A stretch of DNA of 64,000 bases from Hypanus sabinus (lineage: Eukaryota): the NCBI RefSeq assembly GCF_030144855.1, contig NC_082706.1:150412001-150476000 (forward strand). The letters run 5' to 3'. Below the pieces are notes generated by a model that saw only the letters and a list, made by a program, of their open reading frames with translations, made no database searches and had not been told where the DNA came from. A program made the translations under genes and the position numbers. Below are positions 4,361-62,745 of the stretch, piece after piece; position 1 is the first letter of the stretch; the number at the start of each line of letters is the position of its first letter.

Positions 4361-5282
4361 CTGTTATTGCCACACATAGCTGTGGCCTCTCACTAAAGAA
4401 CAACACCATTGACATCGATGTAACCAAAGCTTGCATACAGAGAATTCCATGTGTATGTGTAACTAGATTTCATGTTTCACTCCGCTTCACTTAGAAAATT
4501 ATTTCATCAAGACAGAACCGTGGTTTTCATTGATCAGTCAGTCTCTTCAGTTATATACCATCTGCAAAACAAATTCATCACACTAAGTACTATGGTCTAG
4601 AATTCTGCCCAGTGATTTGGTTTCTTCTTGTTTGTTTGATTGAATTTAGCTATTTCTGAAATCAAGTTATCTCCAAGTAAAAACATATTTTGAAATGTAT
4701 CTTGTCATGTCTCCCCATCAGTCTCCCCATCAAAGCAAGGGAAGAGTTTTAAAATCAAACCAATTTTCCTCATCTCCTTTGGTGCTGGATGAACACATTA
4801 TCATTCAGTACTGGACAACTGCTCAATATGGTGTTAAAAAAAAATACGTGAAAAATAGCATGGCCTACTTTTGTCCTTGGTACAGGCCTGTTGTCAAAGA
4901 ACTGGATGGGAAAAATAAAGTATTTAGCAGGGCTCAGGGTATGTGGCTTTTTGAGTTTGGTAGTCAGAAGACTTGAAGATCAGTTGCTAACATTAAATCT
5001 TTGATTTTGTTTTAATTATTGGAATCTTTTCTGAAATGCAAATGGACCCAATTTGGTACAAATGGAGTGTTTCATGGGAACCCACATTTCACCTTGAACC
5101 TGGGATATAAGAGTAAAATTGACACGTGGGATTATACCTTCTTGGCATTATAATGTTACTCAGAAAACAAAATGACAGAGATACTGAACAAATCAGAGGA
5201 TGTTTGTGGAAGAAGAAAGTGATCCATTACGAAGATAGCCAACTGGATGACTGCATGGGTAAAAACAGCCTGTTGGGAGTTA

Positions 5283-6497
5283 ACACGAGGAAATCTGCAG
5301 ATGCTGGAAATCCAAACAACACACACAAAATGCTGGTGGAACACAGCAGGCCAGGCAGCATCTACAGGAGAAGCACTGTCGACGTTTCGGGCCGAGACCC
5401 TTCAGCGCGCGCGGCCAAGGTGGCCAAGGCCGCCTCGCATGGCCTCACACGGCCAAGGCCCATGCCACGCACGAGGCGGCAGGCAAGATGGCGGCGACCA
5501 AGATGGCAACCCCCATGCCTTGCATGCGGCGCTGCTCAACTGCGCTCGTGGTTTGGACTTACAGCCCTTGGCAAAGTGGCCCTTCTTTCTGCAGCTGGAG
5601 CAGGTAGCTTCTTGGGCCGGGCAGCATTTTCGGGGGTGCTTTTCGAGTCCGCAGAAGTAACACTGCGCAGACTTGTGACTGGCAGCAGCCATGGTCGACT
5701 CACCAGCAGACTGCGGGGACTTCACGGACTCGCGACTGGCAGCAGCCATGGTCGATTTGCCGGTGGGTTGCGAGGTCTGCAGTGTCCATGAGGCCGGTGG
5801 GAGATCGCACGCCTGGAGAGCGCCAGCGTTGTGCAGTGCAGCCTCCAGCATGTCGGCCAGCTCAATCGCCGACTGTAAGGTAAGATCGGTGTGTTCCAGC
5901 AGCCGCTGGCGCACGTACACTGACCTGATCCCCGTAACGAAGGCGTCTCTCACTATGAGCTCTGCATGCTGTTCCGCCGTCAGTCCCCTGCAGTCTCAGG
6001 CCTGCACGAGTGTCTGTAGGGCCCGGACAAACTCAGTGCTTGTCTCTCCGGCCCGCTACCGCCATGTCGCTAAGCAATGTCTTGCATAGACGGTGTTCAC
6101 CGGCTGCCGGTATTGTCTTTTGGGAGCATCCATTGCACCCTGGTAGTCCGTTTGGTCTCTGATCATGGAGTAGACCCTTGCACTGACCCTGGAGAGGAGA
6201 AGCCTGTGCATCGTGGCAGGGTCGGTCACATGAATTTCCTCCAGGTACGATTCGAAGCATGCTAGCCAGAGTTCGAAAGCGTCGCCGGCTTCCTGAGATT
6301 GTAGGTTGAGATCCAATCTGTCCGGTTGTAAAGTGCTCTCCATGTTTTAAAATTGCTGCTAATACAATTGATGCACCATCAATAACTCTCAGAGACGGGA
6401 AGTCCTTCAGGACGAAGGGTCTCGGCCTGAAACATCGACAGTGCTTCTCCTATAGATGCTGCCTGGCCTGCTGTGTTCCACCAGCATTTTGTGTGTG
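5283..6497. mobile_element. PLE-derived fold-back element (inverted hammerhead-bearing arms) with internal Gypsy fragment; 13-bp TSD
   Basis: Arms 5283-5405 and 6404-6497 are near-perfect inverted repeats; TSD ctgttgggagtta at 5270-5282 and 6498-6510. Confidence 0.9.
5406..6403 (-). pseudogene. gag: Ty3/Gypsy (Mag-like) fragment: last ~30 bp of LTR plus gag pseudogene with double zinc knuckle
   Basis: Single frame from ATG 6343 (MESTLQPDRLDL..) with two in-frame stops; RDAFVTGIRSVYVRQRLLE; CYFCGLEKHPRKCCPAQEATCSSCRKKGHFAKGC; 6369-6397 matches the 3' end of the solo LTR at 53402-53613; 57-bp tandem duplication at 5677/5734. Confidence 0.9.
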
Positions 6498-8389
6498 CTG
6501 TTGGGAGTTATACAGTCTTCAAACAATACCCAGGATATGGGATATAAATTACAATGGAAGAAAGAAAAGGCATGTAAAAAATGCAATCTTATGAGAGTGA
6601 TGGAATGTTTCAATATGCAGGTAGATTGGGAAAATTAAGCAGGTACTGGATCCCAAGAGAGGGACTTTATAGAAAGCGTACAAGATGGCTTTTCAGAGCA
6701 TCTTGTAGTTGAGCCCATGAGGGAACAGGCAATTCTGGATTAGGTGTTGTGTAATGAACCAAATTTGATTAGGGAGCTTAAAGTAAAGGGACCCTTCAGA
6801 GTCAATGATCATAATATTGATAGAATTCACCCTACAGTTTGGGAGGGAGAAGATAAAGTTAGATGTATCAGTATTGGAGCAGCAGAGGCATAAGAGAGGA
6901 GCTGCCCAAAGGTCACTATCAGGGATGATGACAGAACAATAATGTTTGAGTTTCTGGGGCAATTCAGAAGGTGCAGGATAGATACATCCCAAAGGTGAGG
7001 AAGTATTCTGAAGAGAGAATAAAGCAACCGTGGCTGGCAAGGGAAGTCAAAGTCACCATGAAAACAAAAGAGAAGGCATATAATATATCAAAAAAAAGTG
7101 GGAAGTTTGAAGATTGGAAAGCTTTTAAAAACCGAAAGCAACAAAAAAAAGCCAAAAGGAGAAAAAAAAAGATGAAATATAAAGGCAAACCAGCCAATAA
7201 TATATAAGAACATGCCAAAAGCTTTTTCTGATATTGCACTGCTGGAAAATAACACTGGAAAAGTAGAAATAGGGGACAAAGAAATGGCAGACAAACTAAA
7301 TCTGTATTTTGTGTCAACCTTCACTGTGGGAAAAACCAGCAGTATGTTAGAAATTTGAGAGTATGTCAGTGTGAAGCGAGTGTAGTTGCTGTACAAAGGA
7401 TACGGTGCTTGGGAAACTGAAGGTAGATTAATCACCTGGACTGGATGGATTTACTACCCAGGGATCTGAAAGAGTTAGCTGAAGAGATTACAGATATATC
7501 AATAATGATTTTTCTAGAATCACTAAATTCAGGAATGGTTCTGGAATTGCAAATGTTACTAAACTATTTAAGAAGGGAGATAGGCACAAGAGAGGAAATT
7601 ATAGGCCAGTTAGCCTGACTTCAGTGGTTAGGTAGATGTTGGAGTCCATTATTAAGGATGAGGTTTCGGGGTATTTGGAAGCACATGACAAAATAGGCGA
7701 AAGTCAGCATGGTCTCCTAAAGTGGAAATCCTGCCTGACAAATCTGTTCGAAGTCTTCGAATAAATAGCTGGCAGGATAGACAAAGGACATTCAGTAGAT
7801 AAACAAGAGAAGATCTACAGATGCAGGAAATCCAAACAATTTGGTTGATGAAATTGATGATTTTGTGACCACATTTCCAGAGAATACAAAGAGAGGTGGA
7901 GGGGCAGGTAATGCTAAGGAAGTAAAGCATCTGCAGAGAGACTTAGACAGATTGGGAGAATGGATAAAGAAGTAGCAGATGGCATATAGTACAGGGAAGT
8001 GTATGGCCAAATACTTTGGTGGAAGACTATTTTCTAAATGGGGTGAAAATTCAAAATTCAGAGGTGCAAAGGGACATGGGAATTCTTGTGCAAAATTCCC
8101 TAGAGGTTATCTTGCAGATTGAGTCAGTGGTAAAGAAGGCAAATGCAATGTTAGCATTTATTTTCAGAGGTCTAGAATACATATAAGAGCAAGGATGTAA
8201 TGCTGAGGCTTTACAAGACATCTGTCAGACTACATCTGGAATATTGTCAGCAGTTTTGGGCCACTTATCTAAGAAAAGATGTGCAGGCATTGGAGAAGGT
8301 CCAAAAAGGGTTCACAAGAATGATTCTGGAAAATAAAAGAGTTAAAGTATGAGGAGTGTTTGATGGCTCTACGTCTGTACATGCCGGGG

Positions 8390-11707: not shown

Positions 11708-11880
11708 TCAGCAGGTCAAGAAGCATCTACGGAAGAGAGTGAACAGTCGACGTTTCAGGCCAAGACCCTTCATCAGGACTGTTTACCCTTTTCCATAGAT
11801 GTTGCCTGACCTGCTGAGTTCCTCCAGCATTTTCTGTTTGTTGCTTGGATTTCCAGCATCTGCAGACTTCCTCTTGTTTT
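11708..11880. mobile_element. PLE-derived fold-back element with hammerhead at the apex
   Basis: 11708-11748 is an inverted copy of 11778-11820; the right arm runs to the family 3' end (ttccagcatctgcagacttcctcttgttt). Confidence 0.85.
11742..11783 (-). ncRNA. Minimal type I hammerhead ribozyme motif (PLE-type)
   Basis: Minus strand AACAGUC-CUGAUGA-AGGGUCUUGGCCU-GAAAC-GUC/GACUGUU: 7-bp stem I, intact CUGAUGA and GAAA core, GUC cleavage triplet, vestigial palindromic stem III (ACGU). Confidence 0.8.
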
Positions 11881-33789: not shown

Positions 33790-36700
33790 TCTTGAAATGA
33801 ATGCTAACATTGCCATTTGCCTTCCTCGCCACTGACTCTGCCTGCAAGATAACATTTAGTGAATACTGCACAAGGACCCTTTGCACCTCTGATTTTTAAA
33901 TTTTCTCCCCATTTAGTCAACTACTTTATTCCTTCTACCAAAGTGCATGATCATATATTCCTCACACTATATTCATTCTGCCACTTCTTTGCCCATTCTA
34001 CCAATAGAAGTCCTACTACAGACTCCCTACTTCCTCAACACTACCGTTCCCTCCTCTTATCTTTGTATCATATGCAAACTTGGTCACAAAGCTATCGATT
34101 CTGTCATCCAAATCATTGATATATAGTGTAAAAAGCAGTCCCAACACAGACCACTGAGGAACACACTAGTCACTGGCAGCTAAACAGAAAAGGCCCCGTG
34201 TATTTGCACTATTTGCCTTCTGCCAGTCAGGCAATCTCCTATCCATGCTAGTATCTAGTACCTTACATGTAATACCTGAGGCTGTCATCTTGTTAAGCAG
34301 CCTCAAGTGTGGAACTTTGTCCAAGACCTACTGAGAATCCAAGTAAACAACATCTACTGACTCTCCTTTGTCTATCATATTTATTATTTTCTCAAAGATT
34401 TCCGAATGATGTGTCAGGCAAATTTCTTCTTAAGGAAACCATGCTGACTTTGGCCTATTTTATCACATACCCCTAAGAACCTAAAACCTTATCCCTAATA
34501 CTGGACTTCAACGTTTTCCAAACCATTGAAGTCAAGCTAACTGGCCTTTCATTTCCTTTCTTCTGTCTGCCCCTACTTCTTAAAGAATGAAGTGCCATCT
34601 ACAATTTAGCAGTCCTCAGGAACCATTCTTTGAAAGATTATTAGTAATGCTTTTACAATCTCTTCAGCAATCTCTTTCATAACCCTGGGGTGTAGTCCAT
34701 CTGGACAGGCTGACTTATCTAAATTTAGAGTTTTCAGCTTCCCATGCACCTTCTCCTTACTACACAACTACACTCACATCTGCCCCTTGACACTCTCAAA
34801 TTTCTGGTATAATGCTAGGGTCATTGAGAGTGAAGACTGACACAAAATACTTATTAAGTTCATCCGGTATTTCTTTGTCTCCCATTGCTGCCTCTTCAGT
34901 GTCATTTTCCAGTGGTCCACTCTCACCTCTCTTTTACTCTTTATACGGCTGAAAAACTTTTGGTACCCTATTTTATATTGTTGGATAGCTTACATTCATA
35001 TTTCATCTTTTCTCTCCTCATGGCTTTTTAGCTGTCTTCTGTTGGTGTTTAAAAGCTTCCCATTCCTCTAATTCCCCACTAGATTTTTCTATATTATCAC
35101 ATTTTGCTTTGTGCTGTCTTTGACTTCTGTTGTCAGCCACAGATGCATAATCCTCCCTTTAGAATACTTCCAATGGCTAGAATAATTCCAGCCATTGCTG
35201 CTCTGACCCTCTCATTTCCCCTTCTGGTCAACTTCGGCCAGCTCCTCTCTCGTGCCTCTGTAATTCCAATTACTCCATTGTAATACATTATAGCTGATTT
35301 TTCATTCTCCCTATCAAACTACCTGGAGAATTCTATCATTTTCTGATTACTGTCTCCTAAGGGTTACTTTACTTTAAACACTCCAATCAAATCTGTTCCT
35401 TACACAACAGCATTGTGAATTGGCTTTCCCCAGTGAGCTCGGCCTCAAGCTACTCGAAAAATGCCATGTCATAGGCATTCTATAAATTCCTCTCTTGGGA
35501 TCCAGCACCATACTGATTATCTCAATCTACCTGCATATTGAAGCCCCCCATCACTTTTGTAACATTGCCCTTTTTTACATGCCTTTTCTCTCTCCTGTTG
35601 TAATTCATATCCCACATTCTGCCTACTATTCAGAGACCAGTCGGGATTTCAGGCCGTGACCATTGAACAGTCCTGCCAAAACGTTTTGACCAGAAACGTC
35701 AACTGTACTCCTTTTCAAAAATACTGGGGCTGGCCTGCTGAGTGCCTCCAGCATTTTGTGTCTGTTGTTTGGATTTCCAGTATCTGCCAATTCTCTGTGG
35801 TTTGTGATTCAGAGGCCAGTATATAACTCCCATTAGGGTTATTTTACCCTTGCAATTTCTTAACTCCACCGACCAGAATTCTATGTCATTCCATTCTATG
35901 TCACCTCTCCCTAAGTGTTTGATTTCATTTTTTACCAACAGAACCACTCACCCTCTCTGCCTATTTGTCTGTCTTTTTAATACAAGATGTATTCTTGGAT
36001 GTTAAGCTCCCAACTATGATCTTCTTTCAGCATGTAATCTCTAACTTCATTACAAGATCATCTACCTTATTCCCTATAGCATGCACATTCAAATATAACA
36101 TCTTCAGCCCTGTATTCATCACCCTTTTTGATTTTGCCCCCATGTTACACTTCAACTCATCTCACTGACTGCAATTTGGCCCTTTCAGCTGCCTGTCCTT
36201 CCTCATAGTCTCACTGCACACTGCATCTACTTGTATACCAACTGACCAACCTTGGACCTATCATACTAGCTCCCATCCCCTCACCAAATTATTTTAAACC
36301 CTTCCTAGTCGCAAGGATTTTGATCCCCTTTGGGTTCTGATGCCAACCTTCTTTTTTGTACAGATCATAACTTACGCAGAAGAGACCGCAAAGATCCAAA
36401 AACCTGAAACCCTGCTCTCTACTCCAATTCTTCAGCCACATATTCATCTGCCAAGTTATCTTATTCTTACCCTCCCTGGCGCATGACACAGACAGCGATC
36501 CAGAGATTACAAGCCTGCTCTTTAGCTTTCTAACTAACTCCCTACATTCTTTCTTCAAGAATGTTTCCCTTTTCTTAGCTATGTTGTTAGTACCAATATG
36601 TATAATGACTTTTGGCTGCTCACCCTCCCCCTTTAGAATGCTGTCAACCCAGTCTGAGAAAACCTTGACCCTTGCACCTAGGAGGCAAAATCCCATCCAC

Positions 36701-37400
36701 TTTTCTTTCTGACATCCATGGAACCTCCTGTGCTCTCCTCTGACTATGGAATCACCTTTCCTACTGCAATCCTCTTCTCTCCCTTCCCTCTGAGGCACAG
36801 AGCCAAACTCAATGCCAGAGACCTGGTCACTGCAGCTTCTTCCATAGATGTTCACCCCCCCACCCCCCCAACAGTATCCAAATTGCAATAGTTATTATTG
36901 AGGGGAGCAACCACAGGGATACCCTGCACTGGCTGACTATTCTCTTTCCCTCTCCTGACAGTCACCCAGGTACGTTCCTTCTGCAATGTAGGGGTGAGTA
37001 ACTCTTTCGAACTCCCTGTAGCTACTATCTATCATCTCACTTTCCCATATGAGGCAAAGTTCATTAAGCTGCCACTCCAATCTCTTAAAACGCTGTCTAA
37101 GCTCCTGCAGCTTGATGCACTTCATGCAGATGTAGTTATCAGGGAGACTGAAAGTCTCCCAGAGTTCCCACATCTCACACCATTCTCAGTGCTCTAGTTT
37201 TGTACTAATAGACTAAGAAAGAGATGCAAAAAGCTAACTATAAACTTACCTGGAACCTCTGTCTGTGCTAGCCCAAGCCTGTTCTCACCATACTATGTTG
37301 AGTTAAAGTCTCCAGTTCTAATGGCCCACTTCAGCACTGGCTGCTCTGCTTACACCTCGCTTCTTTTTATTGGCTCAAATAAAACCCACTCGTGAAATGA
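33790..37400 (-). mobile_element. Degenerate near full-length CR1 LINE (5'UTR, ORF1 zinc finger/coiled coil/esterase, ORF2)
   Basis: MWELWETFSLPDNYICMKCIKLQEL; KGDSIVRG..VIIHIGTNNI; ELRNCKGKITLMGVIYWP; RT remnants 33790-34760. Confidence 0.92.
35642..35806 (+). mobile_element. PLE-derived hammerhead unit inserted in CR1; 14-bp TSD
   Basis: TSD attcagagaccagt (35628-35641) / attcagaggccagt (35807-35820); degenerate cagtcctgccaaa..gaaacgtcaactg; short inverted 5' piece. Confidence 0.82.
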
Positions 37401-42859: not shown

Positions 42860-43997
42860 TATGAGTTCCAATGACCTCACTGCCAGATTCAGCTCAAACC
42901 ATGTAATCCAGTTCACTGATGATACAACAGTGGCTGGCCTCATCAGAAACAATGCTAAGTTGACATACAGGGAGAAGGTAGAGAGGTTTGTCAAATTGTG
43001 TGAAAACAATAACACCATTTGTTTCAATGTGGCTCAACATGGACAAAACAAAAGAGGGTCACATCAATGACCCTGCCATAGAGTAAAGAGCACAAGGTTT
43101 CTTGGTGTGCACATAATGGATGATCTAACCTGGACCCACAACACCTCTTCACTAGTCAGGAAGACACAGCAACATCTACATTTTCTGAAGAGATTGAGGT
43201 GTGCAAGCCTCCGTGCCCCCATTCTAACAACTTTCTACAGGAGCACCGTCGACAGTGTCTTGTCTACCTACAACACTGTGTGGTATGGAAACTACAAGGC
43301 ATCAGACCACAAGACTCCACGGAGGATAGCAAAAACTGACGTGAGTATCATCAAGGTCTCTGTTCGCCATAATCCGACATGTACTGGGAGTATTGCAGAC
43401 AAAGATCCCGAAGCATTGTTGAACATCCCTACCACTTATCCCACAATCTCTCTGACCCACTGCCATCAGGAAGGAGATACACAAACATTAGGATTAGGAT
43501 TGCCAGGCTGTGTAACTGCTTCTTCCCTTAAACTGTGAGACTAACAGATACCCTACCACTAACAAGGTCTCATCACTAGGACAGCAAGCTGTTTACTGGT
43601 TACCTATGCTACACACAACATGCATTTTGAATTATATTTTATTAACTTAGTTATGATAATATTAACTTATTTATGAGTTGACACGAGGAAATCTGCAGAT
43701 GCTGGAAATACAAACAATACACACAAAATGCTGGTGGAACACAGCAGGCCAGGCAGCATCTATAAAGAGAAGCACTGTCGACGAAGGGTCCTGACCCGAA
43801 ACGTCGACAGTGCTTCTCCTTATAGATGCTGCCTGGCCTGCTGTGTTCCACCAGCAATTTGTGTGTGCTGTTTTTATTTATGAGCTGTGTGCGATATTTA
43901 TTTTTTGGGTGCACATTGTCTGAAAGAACATTGTTTCATTTGGTCATATATATGTACAGTCAGATGTTGTACAGTCATGTTCAACAAACTTGAACTA
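42860..43997 (+). mobile_element. Rex1/Babar-like LINE 3' portion
   Basis: ARFSSNHVIQFTDDTTVAGLI, RKTQQHLHFLKRLR, TTFYRSTVDSVLS; tail aaacttgaact. Confidence 0.87.
43681..43873. mobile_element. Young PLE-derived fold-back element; 14-bp TSD
   Basis: Inverted arms meet at ctgtc-gacga-agggtcctgaccc-gaaac-gtc-gacag (43775-43810); TSD ttatttatgagttg (43667-43680) / ttatttatgagctg (43874-43887). Confidence 0.9.
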
Positions 43998-53401: not shown

Positions 53402-53613
53402 TGTGGTGAACCTATATCTGTCTGGACATGCCCCCCTGCTGACTGCTCCTGTGGCTCCTCCCACAGACCCCTGTATAAAGGTGATTGGAGGCACTGCTCC
53501 CCCCTCAGTCTCCAGGATGTTGTGTGGTGGGCTCTTGCTGCTGACGGCTCAATTCCATTGAATAAAAGCCTATATCTCGCCTCACGTCTCTGAGAGTTAT
53601 TGATGGTGCATCA
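53402..53613 (+). mobile_element. Solo LTR (212 bp) of the Gypsy family seen at 5406-6403
   Basis: TG...CA termini; TATAAA ~53475; AATAAA at 53561; 5-bp TSD gtcat/gttat (1 mismatch); last 29 bp identical to minus-strand 6369-6397. Confidence 0.9.
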
Positions 53614-59799: not shown

Positions 59800-62745
59800 A
59801 TGTGCAGACATCTGTGCAGGTAAGCAAGTGTGCATTTAAAAGCAATGCTTCATGGGAGTTTTGGCATTTGAACAGCAGCCAATCAGAGATCAAAAGCAAG
59901 AGAAGAGGTACCTCACGCAGGTTGGTGAATGTGCATTACAAAGCACTGCTTCTCAGGAGTTTTGATGCTTGAACAGCATCCAATCAGAGTTTGGGATTCA
60001 TTAGCAAAGGCAAAAAATATAGGGCAGGGGCAAGTGGAGCTGCCTTTATTTGAGTGACAATTGTTGGAGTGGATAGTGTCAGAATGAGGATTTGAGGCTT
60101 CAGCAAGGAAAGGCTTGAATGACAGAAGGCAAGAAGCTGTAGGTAGATTTTTTTTTCCAGTTTATTTAGTTATTGCTTCCTTTTTTATAATTGCATAGTT
60201 AGTGTAGTAGGAATGCCAGGCAAGATAGTTGAATGCTCTTCTGACAGGATATGGGAAGTCTTGGAGTCCTCCAGTGTCCCTAACAACTTAACCTGCAAAA
60301 AGTGCATCCAGCTACAGCTTTGAGCACTCCGCATTAAGGAGATGGAACTGAAACTGAGCAACATATGGACCATTCAAGAGGCCGGGGGAGGGTGGTGGTG
60401 ACAGGTCATATAGAGAGATAGTTACTCCCACCAGGGAGCAGGACATGGGAAACTGGGTGACTTTCAGAAGGGTGAAAGGGGTTAAGCAGCCAATGCAGAG
60501 TACCCCTGTGGCTATCTCCTCAACAACACGTAAGCCACTTTGGATATTGTTTTAGGGGGAGGTGGGGTAGTGACCTAGCAATGGAAAGTCGCAGCAGTCC
60601 AATCTCTGGCAGTAAGTCTGATTCTGTAGCTCAGAAGGGAAGGGAGAGGGAAGAGGCAAGCTATTGTGACAGGAGATTTTTTAGTTAGAGGACCAGAAAT
60701 TAGGTTCTGTGGATGAGAATGAGATTGCCAGATGATATGTTGCCTCCTGGGTGCCAAGGACCAGGACATTTTGGATCAAGTCCTCAGCATTCTTAAATGG
60801 GAGGGTAAGCAGCCAGAGAACATGGCCCCTATAGGTGCCAATGACATAGGTAGGAAGAGGAACAAAGTGCGGCAAAGTGAGTTCAGTGAGTTTGATGTTA
60901 AGTTAAAGGACAGGACCTCCAGGGTTGTGATCTTAGTATTACTATCCATGCCACATGGTAGTGAGGCTGGTGTGGAAGACACTAGCAGTATCTCTGATGT
61001 TGTAGTGTGTGAAGGGAGAGAAGTGGGTGCAGTTACTATTACAAAAGAGAAGGTGCTCAAAAAGCTGAAAGATCTGAAGGCACGCAAGTCACCCGGACCA
61101 GATGAACGGCACCCTTAGATTCTGAAAGAGGTAGAATTAGAGACTGTGGTGGCATTAGGAATGATCTTTCAAAAATCATTGCTCTCCATGGTAATAGAGG
61201 ACTAAAAAATTGCAAATGTCACTCCACTCTTTAAAAAAAAGAGAAAGGCAGCAGAAAGGAAATTATGAAGCTCAGTGATTGGGAAGATGTTAGAGTCAAT
61301 TGTTAAGGATGAGGTGATGGAGTACTTGGTGACACAGGGCAAGATAGTACAAAGTCAACATGGTTTCTTTCAGAGAAAATCCTGCCTGACAAACCTGTTG
61401 GAATTCTTTGAGGAGATTATAAGTAGGACACATAAAAGGGGAGCAGTGGATGTTATATATTTGGACTTTCAGACAGCCTTTGACAAGGTGCCACACATTA
61501 AGATCCCATGGTATTACAGGAAAGTTACTAACATGTTTAGAGCATTGGCTAAATGGTAGAAGGCAGTAAGTGGGAATAAAAGGATCCTTTTTTGATTGGC
61601 TGCCAGTGACTAGTGGTGTTCTGCAGGCATCGGTGTTGGGACCACTTCTTTTTATGCTGTATATAAATGACTTAGATGTTGGAATAACACACACAAAATG
61701 CTGGTGGAACACAGCAGGCCAGGCAGCATCTACAAGGAGAAGCACTGTCGATGTTTCAATAGTTCTAGAATACAGGATCAAGGATGCCTGGAAGTGATGA
61801 ATAAGAAGGGTGTAACCACATTATAGAGCTATATTATAGTCCACCCAATAGTCTATAGGACTTTGAGGAACAAATCTGTAGAGAGGTCTTGTCCAGATGG
61901 AAAAATGGGCTGAAAAATGCCAGCTGAAATTTAATGCAGACAAGTGTGAGGTGTTGCACTTTGGATGAACCAATCAGTGTAGGTCTTTCACAGTGTGTGG
62001 TAGGGAACTGAGGAACTTAGCAGAAGAAAAGGACCTGGGAATACAGATCTATAATTCATTGAAATTGGCGGCATAGGTAGATAGGATCGTAAAGATAGCT
62101 TTTGGTATATTGGCTTTCACAGATCAAAGTATTGAGTACAGGAATTGAGATGTTATGTTTAAGTTGTATAAGACATTAGTGAAACCTAATTTGGAGTATT
62201 GTGTGCAGTTTTGGTCACCTACCTACAGGAAAGATGCAAGTAAAATTGAAAGAGCACAGTGAAAATTCACAAGGTTGTTGCTGGGACTGGAGGACCTAGT
62301 TTTAAAGACAGATTGAATGAGTTAGAACTTCATTCCCTAGAATGTAAAAGAATGAGGGGTGATTTGACAGAGTATACAAAATTATGAGGGGTATAGATCC
62401 GGTAAATGCATGCAGGCTTTTTCCACTGAGGTTGGGTGGGACTACAACTAGAGGTCATGGGTTAAGGGTGAAAAGTGAAATATTTAAAGAAAACATATGA
62501 GGAAACTTCTTCACTAAATGTTTGGTGAAAGTTTGGAATGACTGCTAGCACAAGTGCAGGATGCAAATTTGATTTCAACATTTAAGAGAAGTTTGGATAG
62601 GTACATGGATGGGATGGGTATGGAGAGCTATGGTCCTGGTGCACGTCAACGGGACTAGGCTCATTAAATAGTTAGTTCAGCATGGTCTAGATGGACTGAA
62701 GGCCCTGTTCTGTGCTGTGGTTTTCTTTGACTCTATGACTCTATA
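59800..62745 (+). mobile_element. Mosaic CR1 LINE: 5'UTR, ORF1 zinc finger/esterase, large deletions, RT, PLE piece (61686-61757), and EN/3' end of a second CR1 type
   Basis: MPGKIVECSSDRIWEV..TCKKCIQLQL; CCLLGAKDQD..IGANDIGRK joined directly to KSPGPD; YINDLDVGI then a PLE arm; tail (ctatgact)n. Confidence 0.9.

Follow-up and report, generated by a model that had tools for sequence, protein, structure and literature searches.

Insertions of Penelope-like elements (PLEs) have been described as inverted, 5'-truncated copies with a tail of 30-40 nt at one end and target site duplications (TSDs) of variable length (PMC8557442), and the one-end tail was likewise described in PMC11167929. The Penelope protein of the anole (PAc) cleaves and extends both DNA strands, and the spacing of its two adjacent start sites for the reverse transcriptase (RT) equals the tail (PMC11167929). 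Penelope minimal hammerhead ribozymes carry a bulged base and a palindromic ACGU (PMC4209133). On the side of DNA repair, the part of PMC1976456 that cites Moore & Haber 1996, Teng 1996 and Yu & Gabriel 1999 presents cDNA of long terminal repeat (LTR) retrotransposons, 140 bp to 5.6 kb in length, as the main filler captured at yeast chromosomal breaks. Here we analysed a locus of the ray Hypanus sabinus where a Penelope-type fold-back had split a long interspersed nuclear element (LINE) and held, at its hairpin apex, a Ty3/Gypsy fragment flanked by a duplicated 7-mer. The window, i.e. the whole stretch of DNA analysed, comprised 64,000 nt without N (NC_082706.1:150,412,001-150,476,000), and all coordinates below are those of the window on its forward strand.

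Reading the sequence from 4500 to 7500 together with a repeat scan revealed three nested layers at 5270-6510: the LINE, the inverted-arm fold-back within it and the Gypsy fragment within the fold-back. This anatomy had been proposed by a sequence-only reading, namely a split LINE with a 13-bp TSD and a 998-bp Gypsy fragment between two copies of CCTTCAG at 5399-5405 and 6404-6410, and all of these sequence facts held. The sequence CTGTTGGGAGTTA formed a perfect 13-bp TSD, with one copy in the endonuclease-coding sequence of the LINE (5270-5282) and an exact repeat at 6498-6510. Beyond it the CR1/L2-like LINE continued on the plus strand (6511-7500), with the end of the endonuclease domain followed by the linker toward the RT. 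From about 6531 this right flank matched, at 68%, a second LINE copy on the minus strand (34657-35621); at the protein level, tblastx matched it to the open reading frame (ORF) at 555-1343, which in turn matched PF14529 of the endonuclease-RT family. On its own strand the second copy ran unbroken through the TSD sequence and was aligned on both sides of it. Since this copy was continuous across the TSD motif, the LINE had truly been split. The left flank of the LINE was single-copy at 90% likeness in other genomes.

The fold-back spanned 5283-6497, although the Penelope-type unit itself was only about 210 bp long. A tail of 37 nt, the Penelope hallmark, stood on the plus strand before the left arm only (5283-5319), and the match between the arms accordingly started from position 37-38 of the left arm. 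The left arm followed on the minus strand (5320-5405), and the tail-less right arm lay on the plus strand (6411-6497). The inverted arms were 94% complementary (5308-5403 against 6414-6509); 81 of the 84 nt that they shared (5320-5403 and 6414-6497) were identical, and the three differences were all transitions. Of the two RT start sites, the outer one opened the left arm and the AC-rich inner one opened the right arm, so priming on both strands fits better than a simple snap-back. Tail asymmetry of the same kind was repeated in another fold-back copy at 43681-43867.

At the inner ends of the arms, the 7-mer CCTTCAG occurred at 5399-5405 and, by reading of the sequence, again at 6404-6410; the probability of such a match at both edges of the insert by chance was about 6e-5. 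Removal of the insert and one 7-mer restored an 84-bp hairpin with the 5-nt loop AGGAC, just as had been claimed, with a folding energy of -110 kcal/mol against -29 for shuffled sequences (z = -25.6). Five stem bases and two loop bases of this reconstructed hairpin were included in the left copy of the 7-mer. The last two bases of the 7-mer, AG, were outside the family consensus of either arm: at loose ends corresponding to 5403 in public-run contigs, other copies read GTCAGGAC after ...CCCTTC. Because this AG belonged to neither arm's consensus, the apex joint probably predated its duplication.

Inverted 5'-truncated arms, a 37-nt tail on one side only and TSDs that varied in length, as staggered GIY-YIG cleavage gives, assigned the fold-back to the Penelope-like group. 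The studied copy had a TSD of 13 bp; those of two further copies measured about 13 bp (43668/43875, one mismatch) and about 8 bp (35630/35800). These three traits are shared with PLEs and their non-autonomous derivatives (pLTR with a minimal hammerhead, and 'non-LTR retrozymes'), as are the minimal type-I hammerhead, the bulged base before helix II and the palindromic ACGU at helix III (PMC8557442, PMC4209133, PMC11167929, bioRxiv 10.64898/2026.07.22.740005). In contrast to those elements, the unit described here was a pure fold-back of about 210 bp without an ORF or a tandem array, the catalytic box of the studied copy was incomplete, and no autonomous Penelope partner lay within the window, where no Penelope ORF was found among the ORFs of at least 180 aa.

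The arms had previously been called hammerhead-armed, which turned out to be partly correct. Helix II and GAAAC were kept on both arms, at 5384-5401 (minus) and 6416-6433 (plus), where a bulged A was followed by GGGUCUCGGCC(C/U)-GAAAC and by the triplet GUC in the left arm or AUC in the right. Thus, the bulged base, the G10.1-C11.1 helix II, GAAA and the palindromic 15.2-16.2 pair with its cleavage triplet were all present in the studied copy. However, a pattern search found the full CUGANGA box on neither arm. The left arm read CUGA-A-helix II-GAAAC-GUC-GAC, three bases short in the box, and the right arm read GACGA-A-helix II-GAAAC-AUC-GAC, without C3 and U4. Rfam returned no hammerhead for the region, the whole window or the older copy described below, either at the gathering threshold for the window or locally at E<=1 and E<=10, with models that were not built for forms with a 1-bp helix III; its only hits were chance miRNA-like hairpins. 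The sole complete match to CUGANGA...GAAAC.NTC in the window (0.03 expected) was at 11749-11776 on the minus strand, in the fold-back at 11709-11877 that belonged to an older, more diverged subfamily. It consisted of CUGAUGA, a bulged A, helix II, GAAAC and GUC, with the fold-back arms extending helix I, and it showed the bulged base and the palindromic ACGU of the Penelope minimal hammerheads. Judging from the motif, the studied copy was therefore hammerhead-armed by descent, in a vestigial form that had probably not retained activity.

The insert was a 998-bp Ty3/Gypsy fragment on the minus strand (5406-6403). Read in RNA sense, its landmarks were the U5 region (6403-6369), a leader (6368-6344) and gag, which began with an ATG at 6343 and extended through two CCHC knuckles (5662-5561). 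The gag sequence kept one frame, with in-frame stops at 6056-6058 and 5996-5998. Pfam gave nothing significant for the two gag pieces, and the class was therefore taken from relatives. An exhaustive profile-free search yielded 2781 relatives, and the domain order of the long ones was that of Ty3/Gypsy, with aspartic protease, RVT_1, RT_RNaseH and integrase; in the relatives P0041, P0053, P0072 and P0129, Asp protease was followed by RVT_1, RT_RNaseH and rve, in support of the Gypsy class proposed earlier. The nearest named proteins in a word-index protein search were 53-79% identical and belonged to three rays, Hypanus sabinus, Mobula birostris and Hemitrygon akajei, which placed the window in a batoid. 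The same search found no near-identical family copy, nor did it recover family sequence past the left breakpoint (5406) for an assessment of microhomology. A 183-aa ORF that ended at the left junction had no exact product on record, and the fragment carried private substitutions.

Both ends of the fragment were located within the Gypsy element. Its sense 5' end was the last 35 nt of the LTR (6403-6369), as matched to a solo LTR at about 53404-53613 with TG...CA termini. A 5-bp TSD had been ascribed to this solo LTR, and the length was confirmed but its two copies differed by one mismatch (GTCAT/GTTAT). Beyond 6403 the Gypsy family ran on into the LTR in 25-28 contigs per run, and AATAAA ended 12 nt before the breakpoint. 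Judged by this signal, the start of the fragment would roughly coincide with a poly(A) site and hence with the R/U5 border. The sense 3' end, reading ...GGCCGCGCGCG without a tail, was in a GC-rich variable repeat stretch that separates the knuckles from the protease in relatives, and the RNA fold of this breakpoint region was not distinctive (z = -1.9). The leader contained no evident tRNA primer-binding site. Its segment TATTAGCAGCAA (6353-6364, minus reading) was a 12-nt complement of an LTR segment overlapping the poly(A) signal AATAAA in the family consensus from loose ends behind 6403, the partner being just outside the fragment, which suggests a candidate Tf1-like self-priming site in place of the tRNA primer-binding site.

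The Gypsy fragment was not an integrase product, because neither end was an LTR terminus and the duplication was 7 bp rather than about 5 bp. Namely, the ends were 35 nt inside the LTR and in gag-distal sequence, and the earlier exclusion of normal integrase insertion was borne out. A LINE-type retrocopy made by target-primed reverse transcription (TPRT) was also rejected: the 7-bp duplication was present but there was no poly(A) or LINE-type tail. None of the Gypsy RT intermediates, standard or self-primed (strong-stop DNAs and the RNase H-cut 5' end), begins at the fragment start. A transcription start at the first base of the fragment seemed doubtful: this base is part of an Inr-like TCACTTC, but AATAAAAG precedes it by only 12 nt, and a better pair, TATAAA and TCAGT, was present about 75 nt upstream in the solo LTR.

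A separate observation concerned other genomes. In six contigs of the public run X1 and one of X7, a joint from 5403 to 6369 was found in which a Gypsy LTR terminus (TGATGCACC...) directly adjoined the apex ...GAGACCCTTC. The hairpin tip may thus be a recurrent integrase target.

Further members of the fold-back family were present in the window. The copy at 43681-43867 was complete and empty, with an apex different from that of the studied copy, and older copies were located at 11709-11877 and 35647-35787. A one-armed fragment at 61683-61758 ended inside GAAAC and was embedded in a LINE reverse-transcriptase region, and a tail fragment was found at 7803-7839. With its flanks (43668-43887), the empty copy had arms joined at a palindromic GTCGAC, the predicted hammerhead cleavage site, and a 13-bp TSD with one mismatch, TATTTATGAG[T/C]TG. 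Outside the window, the family was followed in contigs of four public runs, which break inside repeats. Most of the family contigs continued with GTCAGGAC after ...CCCTTC, i.e. with an intact CUGACGA box, and arm-to-arm joints occurred at many positions. This variation of the apex among copies indicated that it was made anew at each insertion and did not belong to any master copy that replicates. In each of the four runs, contig depth summed over the arms (5244-5405 and 6404-6501) exceeded the depth of the single-copy flank about 10^5-fold, a rough figure that is not a copy number. Few repeats in these ray genomes are probably more abundant than the fold-back family.

The sequence-only reading had offered two origins for the composite, template switching by the Penelope RT onto Gypsy RNA or cDNA and the patching of a break at the cruciform tip with Gypsy sequence. 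The second, or a later non-integrase insertion, was favoured by our analysis, and the first was less favoured. With about even confidence, we proposed two steps: insertion of the fold-back, and later joining of truncated Gypsy DNA into a staggered break at the palindrome tip. The nested structure, the duplication, the lack of LTR termini and the RNA-sense landmarks are plain in the sequence; the order of these events, the break and the source molecule are what we infer. In the first step, a non-autonomous Penelope-type unit would have entered the LINE by TPRT on both DNA strands. The product would have been a pair of inverted cDNA arms, of which one carried the 37-nt tail, together with the 13-bp TSD and a de novo apex joint inside the vestigial hammerhead, and thus an 84-bp near-perfect palindrome with a 5-nt spacer. 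In the second step, a later break or pair of nicks at the duplex apex, staggered by 7 bp, would have received truncated Gypsy DNA, extending from U5 to slightly beyond the nucleocapsid knuckles, without integrase, and CCTTCAG would have been duplicated. The source of this DNA could have been an incomplete cDNA of an active family, or a cDNA on Gypsy RNA primed from the exposed ...CCTTCAG-3' end. Palindromes with short spacers are fragile, and the growth of the spacer from 5 bp to about 1 kb should stabilise the locus.

Two steps were favoured because the 7-bp duplication took in the apex bases AG, as staggered cleavage of a pre-existing duplex gives, and because a one-step route needs two jumps free of homology. 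Of the features of break-repair capture, a truncated cDNA without integrase signatures and a break-prone site were seen; the right junction was without microhomology. The distribution in other genomes gave weaker support. Three organisms whose sequence differed from the window by 1.4-2.7% had the left junction of the fold-back, and hence the fold-back, at the orthologous site. A search with 60-mers from the inner junctions found none of three sampled words in the ten best runs holding the flank, a weak negative given three words and genomes 1.4-2.7% diverged; one sampled word was found in two unrelated organisms, in no run that held the flank. Since the fold-back was at the orthologous site while the sampled insert-junction words were absent there, two steps were weakly favoured. 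At nine listed positions, moreover, the letter of the studied copy was found in no X1 contig and almost never in three other runs, as expected if the Gypsy fragment was absent there or young.

Among known processes, the capture of Ty1 cDNA at double-strand breaks in yeast (work cited in PMC1976456) was similar in that truncated retroelement DNA of comparable size was joined without integrase and without LTR termini. In contrast to those events, the duplication here was a clean 7 bp and the acceptor was a natural palindrome tip in the vertebrate germ line rather than an induced break. Centre-break palindrome revision, in the account that PMC3300023 gives of Cunningham et al. 2003, likewise strikes the tip of a long inverted repeat whose spacer is very short, and abolishes its symmetry. 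However, the outcomes known for it are mostly small central deletions, whereas here a 1-kb insertion was found with an off-centre duplication. We regarded the locus as another example of processes already known, at an acceptor site out of the ordinary.

Several points weighed against the two-step history. A single locus was available, and the order of events was deduced rather than observed. Microhomology or minor losses usually mark the junctions formed by break capture, whereas here the duplication was a clean 7 bp. The 7-mer lay entirely on one side of the symmetry centre, whereas symmetric nicking of a cruciform tip predicts otherwise. Decay at CpG sites was alike, as the arms had lost 2 of 8 ancestral sites and the fragment at least 16 of at least 82, and the two events were thus not separable in time. 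Moreover, the sense orientation of the Gypsy sequence was that expected of left-arm cDNA continuing on Gypsy RNA, and the negative junction search drew on only three sampled words.

Some of these points agreed with the strongest rival, in which a single retrotransposition gave rise to both the fold-back and the Gypsy sequence within it, through a Penelope RT that copied about 1 kb of Gypsy RNA. We considered such an origin rather unlikely. In its most explicit form, which we also judged unlikely, the Penelope RT working on left-arm RNA would leave its template inside the hammerhead box, copy the genomic RNA of a Gypsy element, starting at a GC-rich internal site and running to a 5' end, and return 7 nt back; the cDNA would be joined to the second arm via GAC/GTC microhomology. 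Given the variation of the apex among copies, this joint is a de novo junction of two cDNA 3' ends anyway. On the strand that the left-arm cDNA would represent, the Gypsy sequence ran antisense; one end of the fragment coincided with an RNA landmark, about 13 nt past AATAAA, and its 3' end was arbitrary; and arms and fragment were similarly decayed. Penelope elements have also been reported to retrotranspose host genes in trans (PMC8557442). The present sequence was predicted by both models.

What counted against a single step was the need for two template jumps without visible homology and for the re-copying of exactly 7 nt. The template RNA would also have to carry the rare CUGA-AGG variant of the box, three bases short, which was found in no other copy in the window, whereas the family majority had CUGACGA. 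In addition, the Gypsy 3' breakpoint was unlike a Penelope RT start site, and the junction words were absent from the runs holding the flank of the fold-back. Chimeric retrocopies formed by RT template switching (e.g., U6/L1 chimeras) and templated-sequence insertions are known. They resemble this locus in having a foreign RNA-derived segment 5' of the retroelement part and in the same sense orientation; they differ from it in that here the same element stood on both sides of the foreign segment, 7 nt would have been copied again and no poly(A) was present.

The remaining explanations were far less probable. It was very improbable that a complete Gypsy element had been inserted at the apex by integrase and later cut down by deletions. 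The LTR terminus adjoining the apex at 5403 in the X1 and X7 contigs implied that integrase does use the apex site, and a 5-bp TSD CCTTC there would share the right-hand target boundary seen in the studied copy. However, this history requires two independent deletions, each stopping exactly at the border of element and target, and it conflicts with a duplication of 7 rather than 5 bp and with the absence of an LTR terminus at either end. An assembly artefact joining a fold-back with a Gypsy copy was just as improbable: both families were very abundant, no contig shown bridged either inner junction and inverted Penelope structures are known to trouble assemblies (PMC8557442), but the junctions were symmetric and exact, with a 7-bp duplication, within an element that had its own perfect 13-bp TSD, the fragment had private substitutions and the window was without N. 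Least probable of all was the proposal that arms and Gypsy cargo formed a mobile, ribozyme-bounded composite present at several loci, which had no direct support apart from the high repetition of both families among which copies could hide, and against which stood one copy in 64 kb against at least five cargo-free fold-backs, a degenerate hammerhead core that was incomplete on both strands, three sampled junction words not found in the ten best holder runs and the lack of an ORF with an exact product on record.

The host LINEs provided two side observations. Both LINE copies, 68% alike, carried a fold-back within about 24 bp of the same endonuclease-coding point, at 5282/5283 and at 35621-35800 (minus), where the sequences at the insertion point were ...GGAGTTA and ...GGAGTTATATACTGGCCTCTGAAT. 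The Penelope endonuclease may favour this target, or the coincidence may be due to chance. Upstream of the second LINE copy, the ORF at 36292-36888 (minus) matched a GDSL-type lipase/esterase, PF13472 (E = 1.5e-6, under the curated cut-off), and it may be the esterase-type ORF1 known from LINEs of the CR1/L2 clade.

If the two-step history is true, the locus would be a fossil, left in the germ line, of repair that has mostly been seen in cell culture and yeast: the tip of a fragile palindrome broke, and the patch of retrotransposon cDNA that closed the break also disarmed the palindrome. If instead a single step produced it, the junctions would be direct sequence evidence of in vivo template switching by the Penelope RT, a still-undefined step in mobilisation, and the locus would show in nature how a Penelope RT transduced foreign RNA into a hairpin that descends from a ribozyme. 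Were such events recurrent, they would give Penelope elements a route to shuffle the sequences of other retroelements. The value of the finding lies in a genome-wide count rather than in the single locus, and it would rise if many apex insertions exist. Since the fold-back family was very numerous in ray genomes, it would, under the two-step history, offer many natural palindromes in which the frequency of breaks and the mode of their repair could be measured.

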